Part shown: in pieces, positions 40,540 to 48,461 of the stretch
Numbering within the stretch: the first letter of the stretch is position 1
Layout: every line of letters starts with the position of its first letter
Sequence record: MT710307.1
Length of the DNA stretch: 64,000 nucleotides
Reading direction: 5' to 3' (one strand)
Made by a program: the position numbers and the translations under genes
The notes under the pieces: generated by a model
Database searches by the model: none
Seen by the model: the letters and a program-made list of their open reading frames with translations, nothing else
What the model was told of the DNA's origin: nothing

Positions 40540-41124
40540 ATGTACAATTACGTTGTGTTGGGCCGCAAAGGTAGCATCGTCAGATTCGTCTTTAAATCTG
40601 ACCCGCCCGCCAAGCCGCGCGCGTTGGATTTAGCGGGCTTCGATTATAAAGGCATCCGCAAAGGCGTACAGCTGCACTTCGACGGTGATGTGAAACCGGA
40701 GAACCTTTTGTATTCTGGCGATGTGAAACCGAGAAAGCTTGTGGCTATCGGTAAGAAGAAACCCGCGAAGACTGCAAAAGAAAGCAAAAAGGCACCGAAG
40801 GTTGACCCGATCTTCGTCGTTATTAAACGCGTGAAACAGGTCATCGAATATAAGATCTGCGGGGACGAGTCTGCGGAGCTGTTGAACGAGACTCTGAAGA
40901 TTAGCCTCGCTGGTTACGACTACAGAAAGCTGCGTAAGGACATGACCTTCCAGTTTGAAGGTGGTAAGGTTGCAGCGGAGAACATCCGCTACTGGCCGTT
41001 CCGCGGCACTTCAAATAAGCTGCCGTTGCCGAAGCTTGAAGAAGTTGCACCTAAAGCGAAATCCGCTGCGGTGTCTAAGCGCGGTGCCACACCCAACGTG
41101 TCTATCCTGCGTAAGCACTTCTGA
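40540..41124 (+). CDS. Basic early protein with internally duplicated domain (194 aa)
   Basis: LAGFDYKGIRKGVQLHFDG..KPENLLY versus LAGYDYRKLRKDMTFQFEG..AAENIRY. Confidence 0.75.
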   Translation: MYNYVVLGRKGSIVRFVFKSDPPAKPRALDLAGFDYKGIRKGVQLHFDGDVKPENLLYSGDVKPRKLVAIGKKKPAKTAKESKKAPKVDPIFVVIKRVKQVIEYKICGDESAELLNETLKISLAGYDYRKLRKDMTFQFEGGKVAAENIRYWPFRGTSNKLPLPKLEEVAPKAKSAAVSKRGATPNVSILRKHF

Positions 41125-41131
41125 TCAGTAC

Positions 41132-41168
41132 GTCCTACTCCTTCGGGAGTAGGACTGTTTTATTTTTT
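41132..41168 (+). terminator. Intrinsic terminator (UUCG)
   Basis: GTCCTACTCC-TTCG-GGAGTAGGAC plus T-tract. Confidence 0.9.
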
Positions 41169-41179
41169 AAGGACTGTCG

Positions 41180-41707
41180 ATGACTACTTTTATTGCGGGC
41201 AAGAACTACCTCGCCGCAGACCGTGCGGTAATGAAAAACCGAATGGTATTTGAAGATGCGAAGATTCGCACTATCAAAGGGCGCATCGCGTACTTCTTTG
41301 GTTCAGAGCATCCCACGCCAGACGAACGCAAGTTGCTGGAAAAGCATATCTACGATTACATCTTCGGTAAGCAGAAAGCCCAAGAGGCAGCAGAGCTGTG
41401 GTTGCTGCACTTCATGGAAAGCAATACGCTGGTTGTGATGACCCGCAAGAAGACGCTGACCTTCAGTGCTATCTCACGGCTTGCTGCGTGGTCGCCGGAG
41501 CTGGGTGCCCCAACCCGCCATACAGGACTTACTGTAACCGAAGACCTGCTTGAAACACCTGTCGTTTATGGCTCGGGTGCAGAGTTGGCACGGGCAGGAT
41601 GGGCATGCGGATTACCGCCTGAGAACATCATTCTCATGGTACAGAAAATAGACCCGATGTCAGGGCATGGCTGCGATGTGGTTTACAGAGAGGACTTGCG
41701 AAAATGA
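41180..41707 (+). CDS. HslV/proteasome-beta-like Ntn threonine peptidase
   Basis: M-TT start, LAAD, AKI (catalytic Lys equivalent), YGSG, and D-P-M-SG near C-end, the canonical order in Thr proteases. Confidence 0.7.
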   Translation: MTTFIAGKNYLAADRAVMKNRMVFEDAKIRTIKGRIAYFFGSEHPTPDERKLLEKHIYDYIFGKQKAQEAAELWLLHFMESNTLVVMTRKKTLTFSAISRLAAWSPELGAPTRHTGLTVTEDLLETPVVYGSGAELARAGWACGLPPENIILMVQKIDPMSGHGCDVVYREDLRK

Positions 41708-42252
41708 GTACCGTTTCTATTGCTGGTTTCGTTGTGAATGGTGTGGTCTACGTCAACACCGCTGTTCAATCCATGCACCTGATGGCACCGTACAACCCCG
41801 AGGCGGGGTTCGATAAACTCGGGTGGTGGTTCCCGAACGACGGACAAGAAAAAATCAGTGACATCTTGGTTAATGGGGACGATTGCGAACGCCATGAGGA
41901 CATTACCTACTCCGGTAGTGTGCTGCGTCACGATGGTCGATTCTACGATGTTAAATTGGCCGGGCCAAACTATCGATTAACTTTCCTCCATCAACCAACC
42001 TCCGTGATGGTCTTTCCAGCCGATACGGAATCGGCGTTTGTGGCGACCTTTATCGAGCACCTGTCCATGCACCCCGATTTGGACACCGAAGGGCCTGAGT
42101 GGAGTGCAGAGCGTATCACGAAGATATTGTCGTGCTTCGGAGGCTGCCACAACTTCATCCCTTTCATGACTCTGGATGAACTCAAAGCCAAAGTCCAAGC
42201 GATGCCAGAGTGTAAATTAGCGCCCTTCCCCCGCCAAAGAAAGCCGGAATAA
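41704..42252 (+). CDS. Hypothetical protein, possible degenerate Ntn-fold partner (182 aa)
   Basis: ATGA-coupled to peptidase, similar size, MSTVSIAGFVVNGVVYVNT resembles the S1-S2 strands; GSG and D..SG absent. Confidence 0.35.
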   Translation: MSTVSIAGFVVNGVVYVNTAVQSMHLMAPYNPEAGFDKLGWWFPNDGQEKISDILVNGDDCERHEDITYSGSVLRHDGRFYDVKLAGPNYRLTFLHQPTSVMVFPADTESAFVATFIEHLSMHPDLDTEGPEWSAERITKILSCFGGCHNFIPFMTLDELKAKVQAMPECKLAPFPRQRKPE

Positions 42253-42313
42253 GAACGCGCAGATTTATAACAACATCACCCCTTTTAATGACAAACACAA
42301 GAGGATTATCATC

Positions 42314-42925
42314 ATGCAATCTGTAGCTCATGCGTTATCCCCAGTTACGTTTCCAAAGTTCACCGGTCTGCAAGTCTACATGTTGCAAGCCACCGCAGGG
42401 ACGCTCGCCGATGTAGCGCCTGAAGGTTATCGTGACCTCGTTAGCAACATGCTGAAAGATGGTAACATTCCTGCGGACACACAGGTCTGGCTGACGGTTG
42501 ATGAGTCGAACGTCAAAGCCGGTAAGAAGCAACGTCGTGGCGGTGCACACATCGATGGCAACTACGACCTCTTTGCGGGTGACTGGTGCACCGGTAGTTC
42601 TGGCTGGTTAAACGGGGTGCCGGGACGTGAACTGACGCTTGAAGAACACCATCGCAGTTATCAGGAGTTCGGTGGTGGGATGCTGATTGCCTCCAACCAT
42701 GCAGCCTGTCAGGTGTGGGAAGGGGAAGTGAACGGTATTCCTGGTCAAGGTGGCGACTGTGAGCATCTTCGTGACCAACTGGAAACGCTCCCGACCTATC
42801 TGATGGAAAGTAACCGAACGTACCTGACGAACTCACAGTGTGTGCACGAGTCGTTACCATTAAAAGTTGACTTTCCACGTCAGCTTGTGCGCATCACCCT
42901 GTCCGAGCAGTACAAATTTAACTAA
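42314..42925 (+). CDS. 2OG-Fe(II) dioxygenase-like protein
   Basis: RRGGAHIDG (HxD), CVHESLP (distal His), RQLVRIT (2OG-binding Arg). Confidence 0.7.
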   Translation: MQSVAHALSPVTFPKFTGLQVYMLQATAGTLADVAPEGYRDLVSNMLKDGNIPADTQVWLTVDESNVKAGKKQRRGGAHIDGNYDLFAGDWCTGSSGWLNGVPGRELTLEEHHRSYQEFGGGMLIASNHAACQVWEGEVNGIPGQGGDCEHLRDQLETLPTYLMESNRTYLTNSQCVHESLPLKVDFPRQLVRITLSEQYKFN

Positions 42926-42951
42926 TCTAAAACCACAAAGAGAATCAGAAC

Positions 42952-43614
42952 ATGGCGAAGCAAAAGAAAGTACGGAACAAAAAATATAACCCGCAGCAAG
43001 CCCACGCAGAAACAGCCCGTATGGTGGTACAAAACTCATTAGCACGTATCTCCTTTATTGGTGCGTCTAACCGTCGTATTCAACCGTACGGCGGCCGCGG
43101 CTTCCAATTCACCGTCAGTCGTCCGGTACGGGTAACGGTCAGTGCAGCATTGGCTGAAACACTGTTCGAAGACCCACGGACATGGTCGGTGTGGATGGCG
43201 CATTATGCTGTTAATGCGGAAGGTGCCGTGGATGTGGAGTCTGGCGTTCTTCGCTTAGACGAATATACCTTGACTGACTTCACGGAAAACGTAGACAAGT
43301 TAGTGGAGCACATGAAACCTGAACACATGATGGATAACCCGGACTACGTGGGCTATGCATTCTTTGCTTCACCGAATGAGCGTTACGATTTCACGCACGA
43401 CACCACGGACGAACGTTTGATTGAAAACTTCATGGCGTCGGGTGTGTTAGAGAAAGAGAACCATCTTCCGCAACACGTTCTGAATGTTACCAAAGAAGAA
43501 CTTATTATCATGCTCATGGCAGACCACGCCAAGTTTGATACCAACATCAGTATTCACCAGCGCGGCGAAGGTGATGATTACCAAGTCGCAAATAAGCAAG
43601 TTATCGGAGAGTAA
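42952..43614 (+). CDS. Hypothetical protein with basic KKVRNKKYNP N-terminus (220 aa)
   Basis: ORF in operon upstream of HslU. Confidence 0.7.
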   Translation: MAKQKKVRNKKYNPQQAHAETARMVVQNSLARISFIGASNRRIQPYGGRGFQFTVSRPVRVTVSAALAETLFEDPRTWSVWMAHYAVNAEGAVDVESGVLRLDEYTLTDFTENVDKLVEHMKPEHMMDNPDYVGYAFFASPNERYDFTHDTTDERLIENFMASGVLEKENHLPQHVLNVTKEELIIMLMADHAKFDTNISIHQRGEGDDYQVANKQVIGE

Positions 43615-43617
43615 GAA

Positions 43618-44184
43618 ATGAAGTTCTGGGAGCGCTTTTGTCGCTTGTTTAAAGATGTCCCTGAGGCCCAGTCCGACGGTGACCGTTATACCCAAATCGT
43701 GCGTGACTACTTCAATGCAGGTAATCACAACGTCGTGGAACTCTGTGATGCCATTGGCATGACACCGCGCTCACTGTACTTTGCGGTTAACGACGACAAC
43801 GTCCGGGCGAACATTCTGCCCCGCCTCCCTGAAAAGATGCGGATGGAATTGCGTGATGAGCTGACCGCGCGTGCGTTCAGTCGTCAGGCCGTCTCGTTAA
43901 TTCGTCCGAGCACCGCGAAGTACGATTTTGACAACCTCAATGAGTTACTGGCACACGTACACGAATTGTTCGAAACCTACCGCATCGAACGTGGCGAGAA
44001 AGTGGACCCCTCTATCAAGGCGTACATCCACTCTCTTACACCGCGTACGGTGCGTATTGCCTTCGTAGGCAGTGGTCACGAATTCAATGTGGGTATCATT
44101 GAAGGTATTAACGTTGTGCAGCAAAACCTGCTTATGGTGAATTATGGAAAACTTAACGCCCGTGGAAATCGTCAATGTTTTTAA
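43618..44184 (+). CDS. Hypothetical protein (188 aa)
   Basis: GGAG RBS; 41-nt overlap with HslU. Confidence 0.7.
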   Translation: MKFWERFCRLFKDVPEAQSDGDRYTQIVRDYFNAGNHNVVELCDAIGMTPRSLYFAVNDDNVRANILPRLPEKMRMELRDELTARAFSRQAVSLIRPSTAKYDFDNLNELLAHVHELFETYRIERGEKVDPSIKAYIHSLTPRTVRIAFVGSGHEFNVGIIEGINVVQQNLLMVNYGKLNARGNRQCF

Positions 44185-45877
44185 CCGTTATGTCCACGGT
44201 CAAGAACTGGCGAAAAAGATGTTGGCGATTGCTCTGCGTAACCGCGTACGGGTAGCATTGCTACCCCTCGGTGAACGTAACAGCGTTCGTAAACAGAATC
44301 TGTTGTTACTGGGGCCAACTGGCTGCGGTAAAACGGCGCTGATGCGCGTACTGAAAACGCAGTTTGGGTTACCTGTCTTAGAGCAGGACATGACGGGCTT
44401 CTCCGAGACGGGCTACGTGGGGCGTAATCTCAATACCGTGGGGACGGACTTACAAACCCTCACGCGTACAATCGCTTTGCCGGACTGGTACGTAGAAATG
44501 CGCACCGGAATGCAACTCGAAAAAGACGAGCAGCGCTATACCCGCGAAGAACTCAAAGCGTTAGAAGAGAAAGAGTACGAAGTGGAAAGTGCTGCACGCC
44601 AAGCGGAATGGGAAGCAGGACGTGATGCTAAAAAGCAACACGAACAAACCCTGAAAGACTTGGGCGTGTTCCCGGACGATGATACGTACAACCATTATCG
44701 CATGGTCTATTACATGCGTGCGTTTTTGGTGGGGTATCATGCACTAAAGAACCTGCCGTACGATGTCATTGATTTCGCGGATATCGAAATGATTCATGGG
44801 CAGAAGCTCATTGATGTCGCGAAGACTGTGGTTGGCCTTGTCGAGAAAATGGCGGGTAGACCGATCAACAGTATCGATGACCTCAATGAGGATCTCAGCG
44901 ACCGCACCGATGAGATGATGGAGAACAACCCCGCGTTGTTAGGCGAGTTCATGGGACTGATGGCCTACAACGAAGTGCTGGAAGCCATTATGGAACTTGG
45001 CACCGATCGCCTCAGCAGTAACCCAGTGGCGGCCTGTGTCTCCTCTGGTGACTGGTACGACGTCGCGCACTCTTTCGATGAAGCTGATGAACGTGACATC
45101 CCGCCCGGCATTGCTTGGCGTCCGATGGACTTCACGGAGTTTGCGCTCTACATCTGTGTGATGTTGGTGCGTGACCCGGAAGGTCTGGAGGAAGTCTTCG
45201 AAGACTGTGATGACTTCACCCGCTTTGCCGACAAGAAACTTTGGAGCTACACCGTCCCTAAACCGGAAGTGGTGCAGCCTAAAGGGAAGCGCAATGTGTT
45301 GTCGAAGAAAGACCTCGACAAGGTGGCGAACTGTAACGGTCGCGACTTCGTGGAGAATTTCGGTGTGGTGTTCTTAGATGAGATTGACAAACTCATTGAA
45401 ACGGATACCACGGGACGGACACATGTCTCCCGCAGTGGTGTGCAGCGCAGTCTGCTCAAGATGGTAGAAGGTGGCCTCTATGCTGGGATTGACACCACGA
45501 ACATTTTGTTTATTGGTGCTGGTTCGTTCGCAGAAGCCCCAGTGACCAAACTGATGCCAGAGTTGCAAGGTCGGTTTACGTTGCGTGCGGAAATGGAACC
45601 ACTTGACAAAGAAGCGATGATCGCAATTTGTCGAATGGACAGCAGCGAGTTCCATGCGATGGTGCGTCTCTTGCGAATCGAAGGGGTGAAAGTCAATTAC
45701 GACCTTGACACCTTTGAGTACATTGCAGAGAAAACCGTTGAAGCAAACTCGGTCGATGACCTCGGTGCACGCCGTTTAGCCGCGATTGTCGAAGCGTTGT
45801 TCCAAGATGCGTTGTACGAACCCAACAAATACACCGACAAAGGTTATGACCTGACTGGTCAGAACCTAAGGAAGTAA
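44144..45877 (+). CDS. hslU: HslU (ClpY)-like AAA+ ATPase
   Basis: TPVEIV..GQELAKKMLAIALRNR, GPTGCGKT, GYVG pore loop, VFLDEIDK, GVQRSLL..VEG, PELQGRF, GARRL. Confidence 0.92.
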   Translation: MENLTPVEIVNVFNRYVHGQELAKKMLAIALRNRVRVALLPLGERNSVRKQNLLLLGPTGCGKTALMRVLKTQFGLPVLEQDMTGFSETGYVGRNLNTVGTDLQTLTRTIALPDWYVEMRTGMQLEKDEQRYTREELKALEEKEYEVESAARQAEWEAGRDAKKQHEQTLKDLGVFPDDDTYNHYRMVYYMRAFLVGYHALKNLPYDVIDFADIEMIHGQKLIDVAKTVVGLVEKMAGRPINSIDDLNEDLSDRTDEMMENNPALLGEFMGLMAYNEVLEAIMELGTDRLSSNPVAACVSSGDWYDVAHSFDEADERDIPPGIAWRPMDFTEFALYICVMLVRDPEGLEEVFEDCDDFTRFADKKLWSYTVPKPEVVQPKGKRNVLSKKDLDKVANCNGRDFVENFGVVFLDEIDKLIETDTTGRTHVSRSGVQRSLLKMVEGGLYAGIDTTNILFIGAGSFAEAPVTKLMPELQGRFTLRAEMEPLDKEAMIAICRMDSSEFHAMVRLLRIEGVKVNYDLDTFEYIAEKTVEANSVDDLGARRLAAIVEALFQDALYEPNKYTDKGYDLTGQNLRK

Positions 45878-45879
45878 TA

Positions 45880-46077
45880 ATGCTTGCGATCATCGTAGCA
45901 ATTATCATTGGCTTTTTGATGCTCAGTGTATTGGGTATCTGGATTGCCAAAGTTTCTATACGGTATCACTGGCCGTGGTGGGTTATGTTAGTAGTGGCGC
46001 TGGCACTCGGCGGTCTTCTCGGCAACGTTTACTTTAACTTCGTTATTGTACCACTTTATCAAAATATCGGAAATTGA
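45880..46077 (+). CDS. Small 2-TM membrane protein (65 aa)
   Basis: Two hydrophobic stretches. Confidence 0.7.
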   Translation: MLAIIVAIIIGFLMLSVLGIWIAKVSIRYHWPWWVMLVVALALGGLLGNVYFNFVIVPLYQNIGN

Positions 46078-46081
46078 GAAC

Positions 46082-46555
46082 ATGGAAAAGAAAACTGAAC
46101 GTAACTTGATTGAAATCACAGGCAAGGGCGAAGACAACAACGGCAAGTTCTACTCGGTCGTGTTGTTAGACCAAACCAGAATGAATGCAAACGGTAACCA
46201 ATATAACGGTGATATTGCACATCTGGTGCGGGGTATCAAACGTATGCCGCGACTGTTCTGTGAAATTGACCCGTACCACGATTACCGTTTTCAGTACCCG
46301 GTAAGCGATGACCGTTCTGTGTCCGGACCATGCACCATTGATAACCGCAACGTTTGCGCATCTATCGAAAACATCCGTCACGATAAGATGAACAAGCGTG
46401 TATCCGCCGAGTTGCGTCCGTGGGGACCACATGCCTCTATGGTGCGTGATTTGATGGATGGGGTAAACCAGAACGTGACCTTCGGGATGCGTGCACTGGC
46501 AACCCCTGATGGCAAGATTGATAAAGTCATCACATGGGATTTATTACCAGAATGA
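46082..46555 (+). CDS. Prohead-protease-like protein (phiKZ gp175/T4 gp21 fold), probably inactive
   Basis: NANGNQY, FCEIDP (vs GExGHP), RPWGPH...NVTFGMRA (vs NVxFSxR), ITWD. Confidence 0.6.
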   Translation: MEKKTERNLIEITGKGEDNNGKFYSVVLLDQTRMNANGNQYNGDIAHLVRGIKRMPRLFCEIDPYHDYRFQYPVSDDRSVSGPCTIDNRNVCASIENIRHDKMNKRVSAELRPWGPHASMVRDLMDGVNQNVTFGMRALATPDGKIDKVITWDLLPE

Positions 46556-46752
46556 ATATCGCCGAACTGTTCTACTGGGTTACCATGGTGTTAAGCGGGT
46601 ATTTCCTTATCGTGATTGCCATTGACATGGTTAAGGATTTACTCAAGGGCGACCTGATGGGTGTGCTCGTTTTGATCGTGTTTGCTATCATCATCTGGAA
46701 CGTCCACCGTTGGGCGTTCGTAAGACTGGTGCCGTTGCAGACATTGTTCTAA
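46552..46752 (+). CDS. Small 2-TM membrane protein (66 aa)
   Basis: ATGA coupling; two hydrophobic helices. Confidence 0.7.
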   Translation: MNIAELFYWVTMVLSGYFLIVIAIDMVKDLLKGDLMGVLVLIVFAIIIWNVHRWAFVRLVPLQTLF

Positions 46753-46764
46753 TGAAAAAAAGCT

Positions 46765-46785
46765 CAGATAGATATTATCTTGATG
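46765..46785 (+). promoter_or_regulatory. Putative early promoter
   Basis: CAGATAGATATTATCTTGATG. Confidence 0.65.
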
Positions 46786-46858
46786 AGCTTTCCATTATTA
46801 GTTCCAAGGAAGGTGCGTTTTACAATTACAATAAATTAAAATAAATAAGGAGTCCATC

Positions 46859-47035
46859 ATGGATAAAATTTATATCGTTACAGCAATCCTCTTCACAATC
46901 GCTTGCTTACTCAGCTGGCGCGTATCATCCAACATGAAACGTCGTAAGTGCCCACCGGGTGCACTCGCGTTTGGTGTTCAAGCCTGTGTTTATGGTTTTG
47001 TGGCCATCTACACCGGTGCGAAGTATTTCATCTAG
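46859..47035 (+). CDS. Small early 2-TM membrane protein (58 aa; not in ORF track)
   Basis: MDKIYIVTAILFTIACLLSWRVSSNMKRRKCPPGALAFGVQACVYGFVAIYTGAKYFI; AAGGAG RBS. Confidence 0.75.
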   Translation: MDKIYIVTAILFTIACLLSWRVSSNMKRRKCPPGALAFGVQACVYGFVAIYTGAKYFI

Positions 47036-47040
47036 CAGTA

Positions 47041-47072
47041 AAAAGGGCACGGAAGTGTCCTTTTTCTTTTTT
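47041..47072 (+). terminator. Intrinsic terminator (GGAA loop)
   Basis: AAAAGGGCAC-GGAA-GTGTCCTTTT plus T-tract. Confidence 0.8.
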
Positions 47073-47092
47073 CGTAAAATAAGGAGTATCAA

Positions 47093-48157
47093 ATGCCACG
47101 TCTCTTAGCGTTCACCGGTGGAGTTGATTCCACATGGGTGTTACAGAAGTTAATTCAACAACCGTCTGCGGATGGCGGTGAAGTAATCCATCCGGTCTAC
47201 ATGGATTTCTATCAAGGTTCTCCGGCAGCCATTGTCGAGTTCCTGCTGGGCAGCGAAATTGCTCTGCGGCTGTTAAAGCACAACAAAGACAATTATAAAG
47301 AGCCGCTGGAGTGGCGCTCACCTCCGCTGCAAATCTTCACGAGCTGTATCATCGGTCGTTCAAGCGGAAATGAAAGTCGCCTGATTCAACAGGGTAACAC
47401 TGTGTTGGGTTTGGCACACCTGATGAATGCGGTGCAAGCACGCCATCCGGGGTCTACCGCCTTAACCGGTTGGAACAAAGCCGACTTCATTGAAAGCAGT
47501 GCGCTGCAAGGTGAGTGGTCGGAAGAAGACTACTTGCGCCTGAAGAAACTCTACAGTGAAATGATGTTCTTCCAAGACCATCACTATCGCTGTTCTCCGC
47601 TTCTCACCCCGGCGTGGGATATGGAGAAGAAAGACATGTGGGATGCACTCCCGGCTGATGTGCAAGAACTGATCACTGTGTGTTCAACCTACATGTTTAA
47701 GATTTACCATGTTAAGTCCGAGAACGCGCTGTACATCTCCTGTAACCCAGAACACTTCGGTAAGTCTGTGCGGTATCTGGCCCGTGGGATTAACCTCACG
47801 GCAGCGTGGCGTATCGCGATTGATGACGAGTTCCATCGTCGACTCAACACGGACAATGTCCCGAGTAACCACTTCGCTGGAAGCTTCCCCAGTGAGCTGC
47901 TGTCCTCATCAGAAACAAGACACCGACCATCGTTGCGTATGCGTTCCGATGACCGTAACCTGCAAATCGAAGCCTACAGTATCGATGAGTGGAAAACGAA
48001 GTTTGACCATGTAGAAGATATGCTAAAGGTGGAACGTGAGCGAGAACAAGCCGAGTACCGCGCCCAGCGAGAAAAAGAGAAAGCTGAAAATCCGGACAGT
48101 CCAAATCGCGAAGTGGCGGAAGGCGAAGTCGCTGCATCCAGCAGTGTCGCTGATTGA
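47093..48157 (+). CDS. PP-loop ATP pyrophosphatase, QueC-like (divergent)
   Basis: N-terminal LLAFTGGVDSTW PP-loop, PVYMDFYQ, TGWNKAD, LLTPAWDMEKKDMW; canonical QueC Zn cysteines only partly present. Confidence 0.65.
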   Translation: MPRLLAFTGGVDSTWVLQKLIQQPSADGGEVIHPVYMDFYQGSPAAIVEFLLGSEIALRLLKHNKDNYKEPLEWRSPPLQIFTSCIIGRSSGNESRLIQQGNTVLGLAHLMNAVQARHPGSTALTGWNKADFIESSALQGEWSEEDYLRLKKLYSEMMFFQDHHYRCSPLLTPAWDMEKKDMWDALPADVQELITVCSTYMFKIYHVKSENALYISCNPEHFGKSVRYLARGINLTAAWRIAIDDEFHRRLNTDNVPSNHFAGSFPSELLSSSETRHRPSLRMRSDDRNLQIEAYSIDEWKTKFDHVEDMLKVEREREQAEYRAQREKEKAENPDSPNREVAEGEVAASSSVAD

Positions 48158-48461
48158 TGTCACGGTCAAATCCGGTATCAAAGCCTTAGCCCCAACGTGG
48201 GACTTTTTGATGGAGTACAAGAACTCCGACAAAGGCCCCGAGGCTGAGGATGCCTACACGAAAAAATATAAAAGCAGAATCCAACAACTCAAACAGGATG
48301 ACCCTGATGTGATGTTGGAACTGCTGTATCAGGATGAGATTATTCTGATGTGTTATTGCCCGGCCGGGAAGTTCTGTCACCGGCTTTTATTAGTTGATGA
48401 GTTCAAAGCCTTAGGCGATGAACATAATGTCGAAGTAATCTACGAAGGAGAAATAACATGA
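48036..48461 (+). CDS. DUF488-like protein
   Basis: IDVTVKSG..LAPTWDFLMEYK and ILMCYCPAGKFCHRLLL; overlaps QueC-like gene by 122 nt. Confidence 0.7.
   Translation: MSENKPSTAPSEKKRKLKIRTVQIAKWRKAKSLHPAVSLIDVTVKSGIKALAPTWDFLMEYKNSDKGPEAEDAYTKKYKSRIQQLKQDDPDVMLELLYQDEIILMCYCPAGKFCHRLLLVDEFKALGDEHNVEVIYEGEIT

Follow-up and report, generated by a model that had tools for sequence, protein, structure and literature searches.

A tail-less HslU-like AAA+ ATPase with a doubled acidic I-domain in the nucleus-forming jumbo phage pSal-SNUABM-04

Introduction

HslU is the textbook AAA+ unfoldase that is wired to a peptidase, HslV, by its C-terminal tails. At rest, the HslU tail is buried between HslU subunits, and upon ATP binding it inserts into pockets between HslV subunits (PMC4106860, PMC6429459); peptides of the last 8 to 12 HslU residues substitute for HslU in activating HslV (PMC4106860, PMC6429459). 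The tail is described with a conserved aromatic residue at its third-last position, and two elements are key for activation, Phe441 and the loop preceding Pro315, a loop that packs onto the tail and touches HslV (PMC4106860, PMC6429459). On the peptidase side, the tail pocket of Escherichia coli and Haemophilus influenzae HslV is lined by F54, F57, and Q114 (PMC6429459). Here, we report the analysis of a 64,000-nucleotide stretch of DNA (the window) from MT710307.1, the 239.6-kb record of Salmonella phage pSal-SNUABM-04, centered on open reading frame (ORF) 121, which encodes an HslU-like AAA+ ATPase without that tail.

Phage pSal-SNUABM-04 is placed by NCBI taxonomy in the genus Machinavirus of the Chimalliviridae, the nucleus-forming jumbo phages. 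Its paper reported HslV genes and no detected HslU (PMC7823757), and the GenBank product name of ORF121 is "putative DnaA protein." In Erwinia phage RAY (Agricanvirus), gp116, an "HslUV protease family" protein, is reported to co-localize with phage DNA inside the phage nucleus (PMC10299810). All coordinates below are window coordinates (MT710307.1 coordinate minus 62000); positions 41000 to 48200 are 100% identical to the record.

Results

ORF121 and its parts, as read from the ORF list, the sequence, and the family alignment, are as follows.

44144 to 45877, plus strand: HslU-like AAA+ ATPase gene ORF121, 577 amino acids (aa), phrog_4339, intact, ending in ...DLTGQNLRK (MT710307.1 106144 to 107877, 100% identity)
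44144 to 44461, plus strand: first part of the large AAA+ subdomain, residues 1 to 106, with Walker A (G57-T64) and the pore-1 loop GYVG (90 to 93); aligns to HslU chains at 22 to 124
44462 to 45319, plus strand: enlarged intermediate (I) domain, residues 107 to 392, 286 aa, helical in the model, 21% Asp plus Glu, net charge −27
45320 to 45874, plus strand: rest of the large and the small AAA+ subdomain, residues 393 to 577, with Walker B, loop 466 to 469, Arg finger, and sensor-2; its end corresponds to host K427
45875 to 45880, plus strand: two consecutive in-frame TAA stops, the second overlapping the ATG of the next gene (sequence and three-frame translation)

By sequence and predicted fold, ORF121 is a relative of HslU. 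Searched against the PDB with phmmer, it matched HslU best (6kww, 6e-48; E. coli 1g4a, 2.5e-42) and ClpX next, over two blocks (residues 1 to 106 and about 393 to 573) that leave the middle of the protein unmatched. An AlphaFold2 model built from a 76-sequence alignment (mean predicted local distance difference test [pLDDT], 88.8) had exclusively HslU/ClpY chains as its top PDB neighbors in Foldseek (6e-20), and the profile of phrog_4339 covered the protein at full length (E value, 1.2e-199; residues 1 to 576 on profile positions 2 to 527 of 552). Given these three values, the likeness is far beyond chance. Pfam returned generic AAA domains only. Among NCBIfam models, the HslU equivalog TIGR00390 ranked first at 199.4 bits (cut-off, 362.45; host HslU, 781.6), its match ending at profile position 419 of 441. 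Because ORF121 departs from canonical HslU in three defining features (tail, Pro315 loop, and curated score), it is classed here, on its sequence, as a member of an HslU-derived phage family (phrog_4339) and not as HslU proper.

A DnaA identity was rejected, since the Pfam, NCBIfam, and PDB matches contain no DnaA family and the best are all HslU or ClpX. Judged by these matches, the DnaA name is a mis-annotation, and the phage's paper is wrong in crediting it with HslV genes but not with an HslU. Orthologues in close relatives are named "putative heat shock protein" or "HslU-like ATP-dependent protease."

The HslV-docking tail is absent. We aligned 76 sequences, including 24 of the phage clade and 49 bacterial HslUs, and used as residue ruler the HslU of the host Salmonella, taken from a Salmonella contig. 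In this alignment, K577 of ORF121 pairs with host K427, and host residues 428 to 443 (16 residues) are without counterpart. Exactly 16 residues follow the K427 column in 48 of the 49 bacterial HslUs, against 0 to 11 in the phage members, none of which (24 aligned) ends like a bacterial HslU. An earlier note on this DNA, made from the sequence without database searches, had the protein stopping at DLTGQNLRK with the tail missing, and the ORF, the double stop, and the family alignment agree. Its figure of 20 to 25 missing residues is roughly right by pairwise BLASTP, which puts the end of ORF121 at host 418 to 420 (about 23 residues missing), and by the TIGR00390 match, whereas the family alignment favors 16; the latter is better supported, and the predicted strand-helix ending fits 16 better than 23.

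The same note had named a frameshift or sequencing error that restores the tail as one finding that would overturn it. Frameshift and read-through are excluded by the double stop and by reading all three frames downstream of it, in which the other two hold stops or a membrane ORF and nothing tail-like. Supply of a tail in trans was likewise rejected, since just five of the window's stop-to-stop ORFs have an aromatic-aliphatic-aliphatic ending, all on the minus strand and none resembling the host tail. The canonical ending is also missing from the genomic members Caitlin, SPAsTU, Kwan, Phobos, and RAY, which were read directly; RAY gp116 carries a longer C-terminal extension (about 40 residues) of unrelated sequence. 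As the truncation is common to 24/24 aligned members and to five further clades, it is a lineage trait and a sequencing error is excluded. The truncation first noticed in this gene is thus real but not peculiar to it, and from these alignments tail loss is taken as an ancestral trait of a lineage of six jumbo-phage clades, present in every member examined.

The loop next to the tail is rewritten as well. At host positions 314 to 317, bacteria have K-P-S-D (P315 in 44/49 and D317 in 45/49), and the phage clade has P-[V/L]-[S/T]-K (ORF121 residues 466 to 469), with the proline one position earlier and a lysine at the 317 position, each in 24/24. No phage-specific insertion that might serve as a substitute docking loop was found in the AAA+ modules, all insertions lying within residues 140 to 370. 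Because the published tail-in-pocket mechanism needs the absent tail (PMC4106860, PMC6429459), normal activation of host HslV would be ruled out, and we infer that ORF121 is unable to engage or activate host HslV in the canonical way.

The I-domain is inserted at the same point as in HslU, after residue 106 and between Walker A and Walker B, and is 286 aa long in ORF121, compared with 125 aa in the host and a median of 127 aa in bacteria. It is modeled as a confident all-helical bundle with one 39-residue helix (134 to 172); the linker to the ATPase (about residues 363 to 388) is of low confidence in the model. In the alignment, it is 12% identical to bacterial I-domains, without detectable homology. 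Searched alone against 1.84 billion cluster representatives (phmmer), it found only its own phage clade; one further match, to a 1,487-aa protein over residues 20 to 67, was set aside as probably compositional. Pfam and PDB searches gave no match over residues 107 to 392, and a BFVD search added only other phage HslU-like proteins, including that of Klebsiella phage Miami. The description of this domain as longer, acidic, and unrecognizable therefore holds, with about 125 residues as the yardstick and relatives in its own clade only. Among clade members it has diverged faster than the motor (median identity, 40% for the I-domain and 71 to 75% for the AAA+ modules).

The motor itself is conserved. 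Mapped on the host protein, Walker A is G57..K63-T64 (K63 being host K63), the pore loop is G90-Y91-V92-G93 (Y91, host Y91), Walker B is D412-E413 (host D256-E257), the Arg finger is R477 (host R325), and sensor-2 is R543-R544 (host R393-R394). These ATPase motif columns and the GYVG loop are invariant across the 24 phage-clade and 49 bacterial sequences, so that the motifs seen as intact in the letters alone are confirmed against HslU orthologues. Judged by this conservation, the motor of ORF121 is complete and under strong selection. Its AAA+ modules are about 36 to 41% identical to those of bacterial HslU, enterobacterial HslU not being the closest, and they carry a 4-residue deletion after residue 445 relative to bacterial HslU.

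Full-length relatives of the ATPase were found with tblastn in Machinavirus proper and in the Caitlin/ChrisDB, SPAsTU/1252/SPLA3, Kwan/Wellington, CR5/Phobos/Derbicus, and RAY/Ea35-70 groups. The Kwan ATPase (gp148) is tail-less and keeps all motifs. A scan of IMG/VR gave one further clade member and about 79 short ClpX-like AAA+ genes without an I-domain; these ATPases of about 320 aa match both AAA+ blocks, have the look of ClpX or of a minimal HslU, and fall outside the clade. A 586-aa protein that is 50% identical to ORF121 belongs to a cluster of 135 members with the NCBI name "AAA family ATPase [Salmonella enterica serovar Saintpaul]"; since the cluster bears this name, SPAsTU-like jumbo-phage DNA is seemingly present in Salmonella assemblies.

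Around ORF121, the following features bear on a possible peptidase partner.

41132 to 41155, plus strand: terminator-like hairpin (10-bp stem, T-run) just 5′ of ORF116, putative 5′ block boundary (consensus scan)
41180 to 41707, plus strand: ORF116, HslV-like N-terminal-threonine peptidase, 175 aa, divergent; phrog_1040 ("peptidase HslV family"), 7.5e-10
41704 to 42252, 42314 to 42925, 42952 to 43614, and 43618 to 44184, plus strand: four genes between ORF116 and ORF121 (phrog_25529, phrog_8970, phrog_6965, and phrog_11712), function unassigned
45880 to 46077, plus strand: ORF122, small and hydrophobic, 65 aa, abutting the ORF121 stop; relatives have a similarly sized gene after their HslU-like gene
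46082 to 46555, plus strand: ORF123, short paralogue of the phiKZ-type head maturation protease (Peptidase_S80), 157 aa; PF20034, 2.6e-07; phrog_7478, 1e-54; start taken from the record
47040 to 47065, plus strand: terminator-like hairpin with an 11-bp stem and a T-run, downstream of ORF125; putative 3′ limit of block 41180 to 47035 (consensus scan)
Outside the window: ORF1 of MT710307.1, HslV family, 157 aa, less divergent than ORF116; phrog_1040, 2.5e-36

The phage N-terminal nucleophile peptidase that the earlier note invoked as a possible partner is thus encoded nearby, as ORF116. Its profile matched PDB HslV weakly (4hnz, 1e-3), single-sequence PDB searches with ORF116 and ORF1 gave no HslV match, and no NCBIfam or Pfam model matched ORF116 at an E value of ≤0.01, no curated HslV cut-off being passed. 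Its AlphaFold2 model (pLDDT, 89.2) had HslV and proteasome beta subunits as top Foldseek neighbors (E value, 1e-7; template modeling score, about 0.57), and the set T2, D14, K28, and G131-S132-G133 corresponds to T1, D17, K33, and S124 of the mature host enzyme. Across 54 aligned HslV-like sequences, T2, D14, K28, G131, and G133 are invariant, with position 132 being Ser in 43/54 and Thr in 11/54; because the catalytic equivalents are kept in this way, the phage peptidases are predicted to be active. The tail-pocket residues F54, F57, and Q114 are not conserved in phage HslV-like proteins or fall in gaps, in a part of the alignment that is unreliable.

ORF116 and ORF121 share a strand and the V-then-U order of bacteria, ORF116 lying 2.4 kb upstream with four genes between. 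Of the four intervening families, three recur ahead of the HslU-like gene in Caitlin, Kwan, or both. ORF116 to ORF125 are bracketed by the region's two strongest terminator-like hairpins, with no strong one between ORF116 and ORF121, which suggests a single transcription unit in which ORF121 is co-transcribed with ORF116, although the total hairpin count of the scan was not above that of shuffled sequences. A sigma-70 promoter scan of the region gave fewer matches than shuffles and was uninformative; these phages use their own RNA polymerases.

ORF116-type peptidases were found only in Machinavirus proper and the CR5/Phobos/Derbicus groups, 2.3 to 2.5 kb upstream of the ATPase in 17/17 records. 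ORF1-type genes are more widespread and extend to many phages without an ATPase match, including SPN3US-like phages and 42- to 49-kb Klebsiella and Proteus phages; among Salmonella-phage records, 21 have an ORF1-type gene, compared with 12 that have any ATPase match. Given this spread, phage HslV-like peptidases often occur without a phage ATPase. The ORF116 slot of Caitlin, SPAsTU, and Kwan is occupied by phrog_7413 genes, which were excluded as hidden HslV relatives (hhalign probability, 0.05), and the Caitlin and SPAsTU groups have an ORF1-type gene about 100 kb from the ATPase in the record. A six-frame scan of the whole genome of Erwinia phage Kwan (NC_031010.1) with HslV-family hidden Markov models (HMMs) found none (best E value, 1.2, versus 1e-41 to 1e-58 for controls). 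The same kind of scan of RAY found a divergent HslV-like protein, gp56 (phrog_1040, 4.7e-9), encoded 37 kb from gp116, annotated as hypothetical, and of a type confined to Agricanvirus; its nucleophile position holds Ser in place of Thr, preceded by six additional residues. This N terminus is reminiscent of the propeptide-bearing HslV known in Gram-positive bacteria (PMC7468587). The two 179-aa proteins encoded directly after gp116 in RAY, gp117 and gp118, were excluded as HslV-like proteins by searches.

Three further observations concern neighboring genes. Caitlin and Kwan, too, have a head-maturation-protease-like gene no more than 2 kb from the HslU-like one. ORF115 (40540 to 41124, 194 aa) is matched in two stretches by the 104-position profile phrog_12339, as if a domain of about 95 aa had been duplicated in tandem. 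ORF126 (47093 to 48157; phrog_8825) carries the record note "ExsB/QueC-domain," had no Pfam match at an E value of ≤0.01, and has a long, acidic, Glu-rich C-terminal end.

Discussion

We favor the reading that ORF121 is a peptidase-independent unfoldase with at most a facultative hand-off to ORF116, to which we give about an even chance. With the docking tail lost and the acidic I-domain doubled, ORF121 probably works without the host protease. It would be an HslU-descended AAA+ unfoldase, presumably hexameric and private to nucleus-forming jumbo phages (phrog_4339), from which the canonical HslV connection has been removed throughout the lineage, with the tail gone and the adjacent loop rewritten. 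Substrates would be chosen by the doubled acidic helical I-domain and then unfolded or remodeled independently of a peptidase. The likeliest site of action, by analogy, is the phage nucleus, where host HslV would be absent, because RAY gp116, of the same PHROG, is reported with phage DNA in that compartment (PMC10299810). An extra hand-off of substrates to the probably co-transcribed ORF116 through a non-canonical contact may occur and would be facultative rather than defining. The wire of the textbook machine has been deleted and the motor kept across a whole lineage, a natural experiment on how an HslU motor behaves once uncoupled from HslV or on how another coupling can evolve; the reading also offers a testable role for an accessory protein already seen inside the phage nucleus.

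Several observations weigh against this preference. The nuclear location is taken from a homologue that is 31.6% identical. ORF116 sits 2.4 kb upstream on the same strand, V before U, inside the hairpin-bracketed block, and its type occurs only in genomes that have the ATPase, always 2.3 to 2.5 kb upstream (17/17), an arrangement that speaks for a genuine partnership. Some type of HslV-like gene occurs in 5/6 clades, and the absence of one from Kwan could reflect divergence beyond HMM reach.

These points lead to the nearest competitor, a phage-private HslUV-like protease in which the ATPase is the obligate unfoldase of ORF116 (perhaps also of ORF1) and a new interface replaces the tail-in-pocket contact on both partners. 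We hold this to be a substantial but lesser possibility. The strand and the V-then-U order are those of bacterial hslVU, with strong hairpins on both flanks and none strong between; the linkage is shared by two genera, Machinavirus and the Derbicus/Phobos group, with ATPase identity of only about 50% between them; and the ORF116 type is never found without the ATPase (17/17 records). On the peptidase itself, the equivalents of Thr1/Asp17/Lys33/Ser124 are invariant in the 54-sequence alignment (with the Ser/Thr alternation given above), and unconserved F54, F57, and Q114 would fit a coordinated loss on both sides, in a stretch where the alignment is unreliable. RAY, too, carries a divergent HslV-like protein, gp56. 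An obligate pair, however, is hard to reconcile with Kwan, which has the ATPase and no detectable HslV-like gene; with Caitlin and SPAsTU, whose slot holds the unrelated phrog_7413 and whose ORF1-type gene is about 100 kb away; with RAY, whose HslV-like gene is 37 kb away; with the many HslV-like peptidases in phages that lack such an ATPase; and with AAA+ modules in which no new docking element is visible.

The earlier note had left open whether the protein partners a phage peptidase or stands alone, and the evidence remains divided, the operon-like linkage favoring the former and the Kwan genome the latter. Because each gene is found without the other, the ATPase alone in Kwan and the peptidase alone in many phages, we rate the peptidase-independent unfoldase slightly above the obligate private protease. 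A more specific proposal, that the ATPase and the phage HslV-like peptidase form a phage-nucleus protease with a novel docking mode and phage-selected (perhaps basic, DNA-bound) substrates, is in our estimate unlikely; if true, phage nuclei would gain their first assigned ATP-dependent proteolytic machine, with docking unlike the described HslUV, ClpXP, and proteasome-activator contacts.

Interference with the host, in which ORF121 would join hexamers of host HslU or tie up host HslV or HslU substrates and so disable or redirect HslUV, had also been put forward and is improbable. A homologue without its output element has the classic shape of a dominant-negative subunit, and the residues at host positions 56 and 310, which touch the tail in free HslU, remain hydrophobic. 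Yet co-assembly with host HslU is doubtful, because the AAA+ modules are only about 36 to 41% identical and enterobacterial HslU is not the closest; a mere poison subunit would have no need of invariant motor motifs; the large I-domain is conserved within the clade; and the reported location of the RAY homologue, the phage nucleus, is apart from cytoplasmic HslUV (PMC10299810). The poisoning or redirection of host HslU thus has little or no support. That ORF121 is a canonical HslU whose tail fell to sequencing or assembly error, or a nascent pseudogene, has nothing but the bare truncation in its favor and can be dismissed: the distribution data refute it, with the same end point in independently sequenced genomes at 42% to 97% identity, a double stop abutting the next gene, and an intact full-length ORF with invariant motifs and a high-confidence fold.

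Comparison with known systems

Some of this was already known: several genome annotations already call the family HslU-like, and the location of one member has been reported. In the literature searched, we found no description of lineage-wide tail loss, the loop change, a clade-private I-domain, or partial decoupling from HslV.

Like bacterial HslU (1g4a, 1do0, 6kww), ORF121 has a single ClpX/HslU-type AAA+ module, with the same motif positions and I-domain insertion site, and an HslV-type peptidase gene upstream on the same strand, although in pSal-SNUABM-04 that gene is 2.4 kb off with four genes between. It differs in having no counterpart of the 428-443 tail, a rewritten 314-317 loop, the deletion after residue 445, a 286-aa I-domain, and a score below the curated cut-off. 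ClpX is the second-best family, the N-terminal 100 residues of ORF121 matching ClpX chains at 1e-24; the ClpX model NF003745 scores 128.6 bits against a cut-off of 359. In contrast to ClpX, ORF121 lacks the zinc-binding N-domain, beginning directly with the AAA+ module, has no inserted loop at the position of the ClpP-docking IGF loop, and possesses an I-domain, which ClpX does not. Some ClpX homologues work without a peptidase, a functional analogy to the reading preferred here.

RAY gp116 of Agricanvirus shares the family (phrog_4339, 1.9e-180), the motifs, the absence of a canonical tail, and a chimallivirus genome; unlike ORF121, to which it is 31.6% identical over about half the length, it has an I-domain equivalent of 204 aa and the C-terminal extension of about 40 residues. 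Among cellular systems, trypanosomatids offer a precedent, in that changes in the tail and at the position of host residue 315 decide which of the paralogues HslU1 and HslU2 activates HslV (PMC4106860, PMC6429459). Both paralogues keep a substituted tail, whereas in ORF121 the tail is wholly missing.

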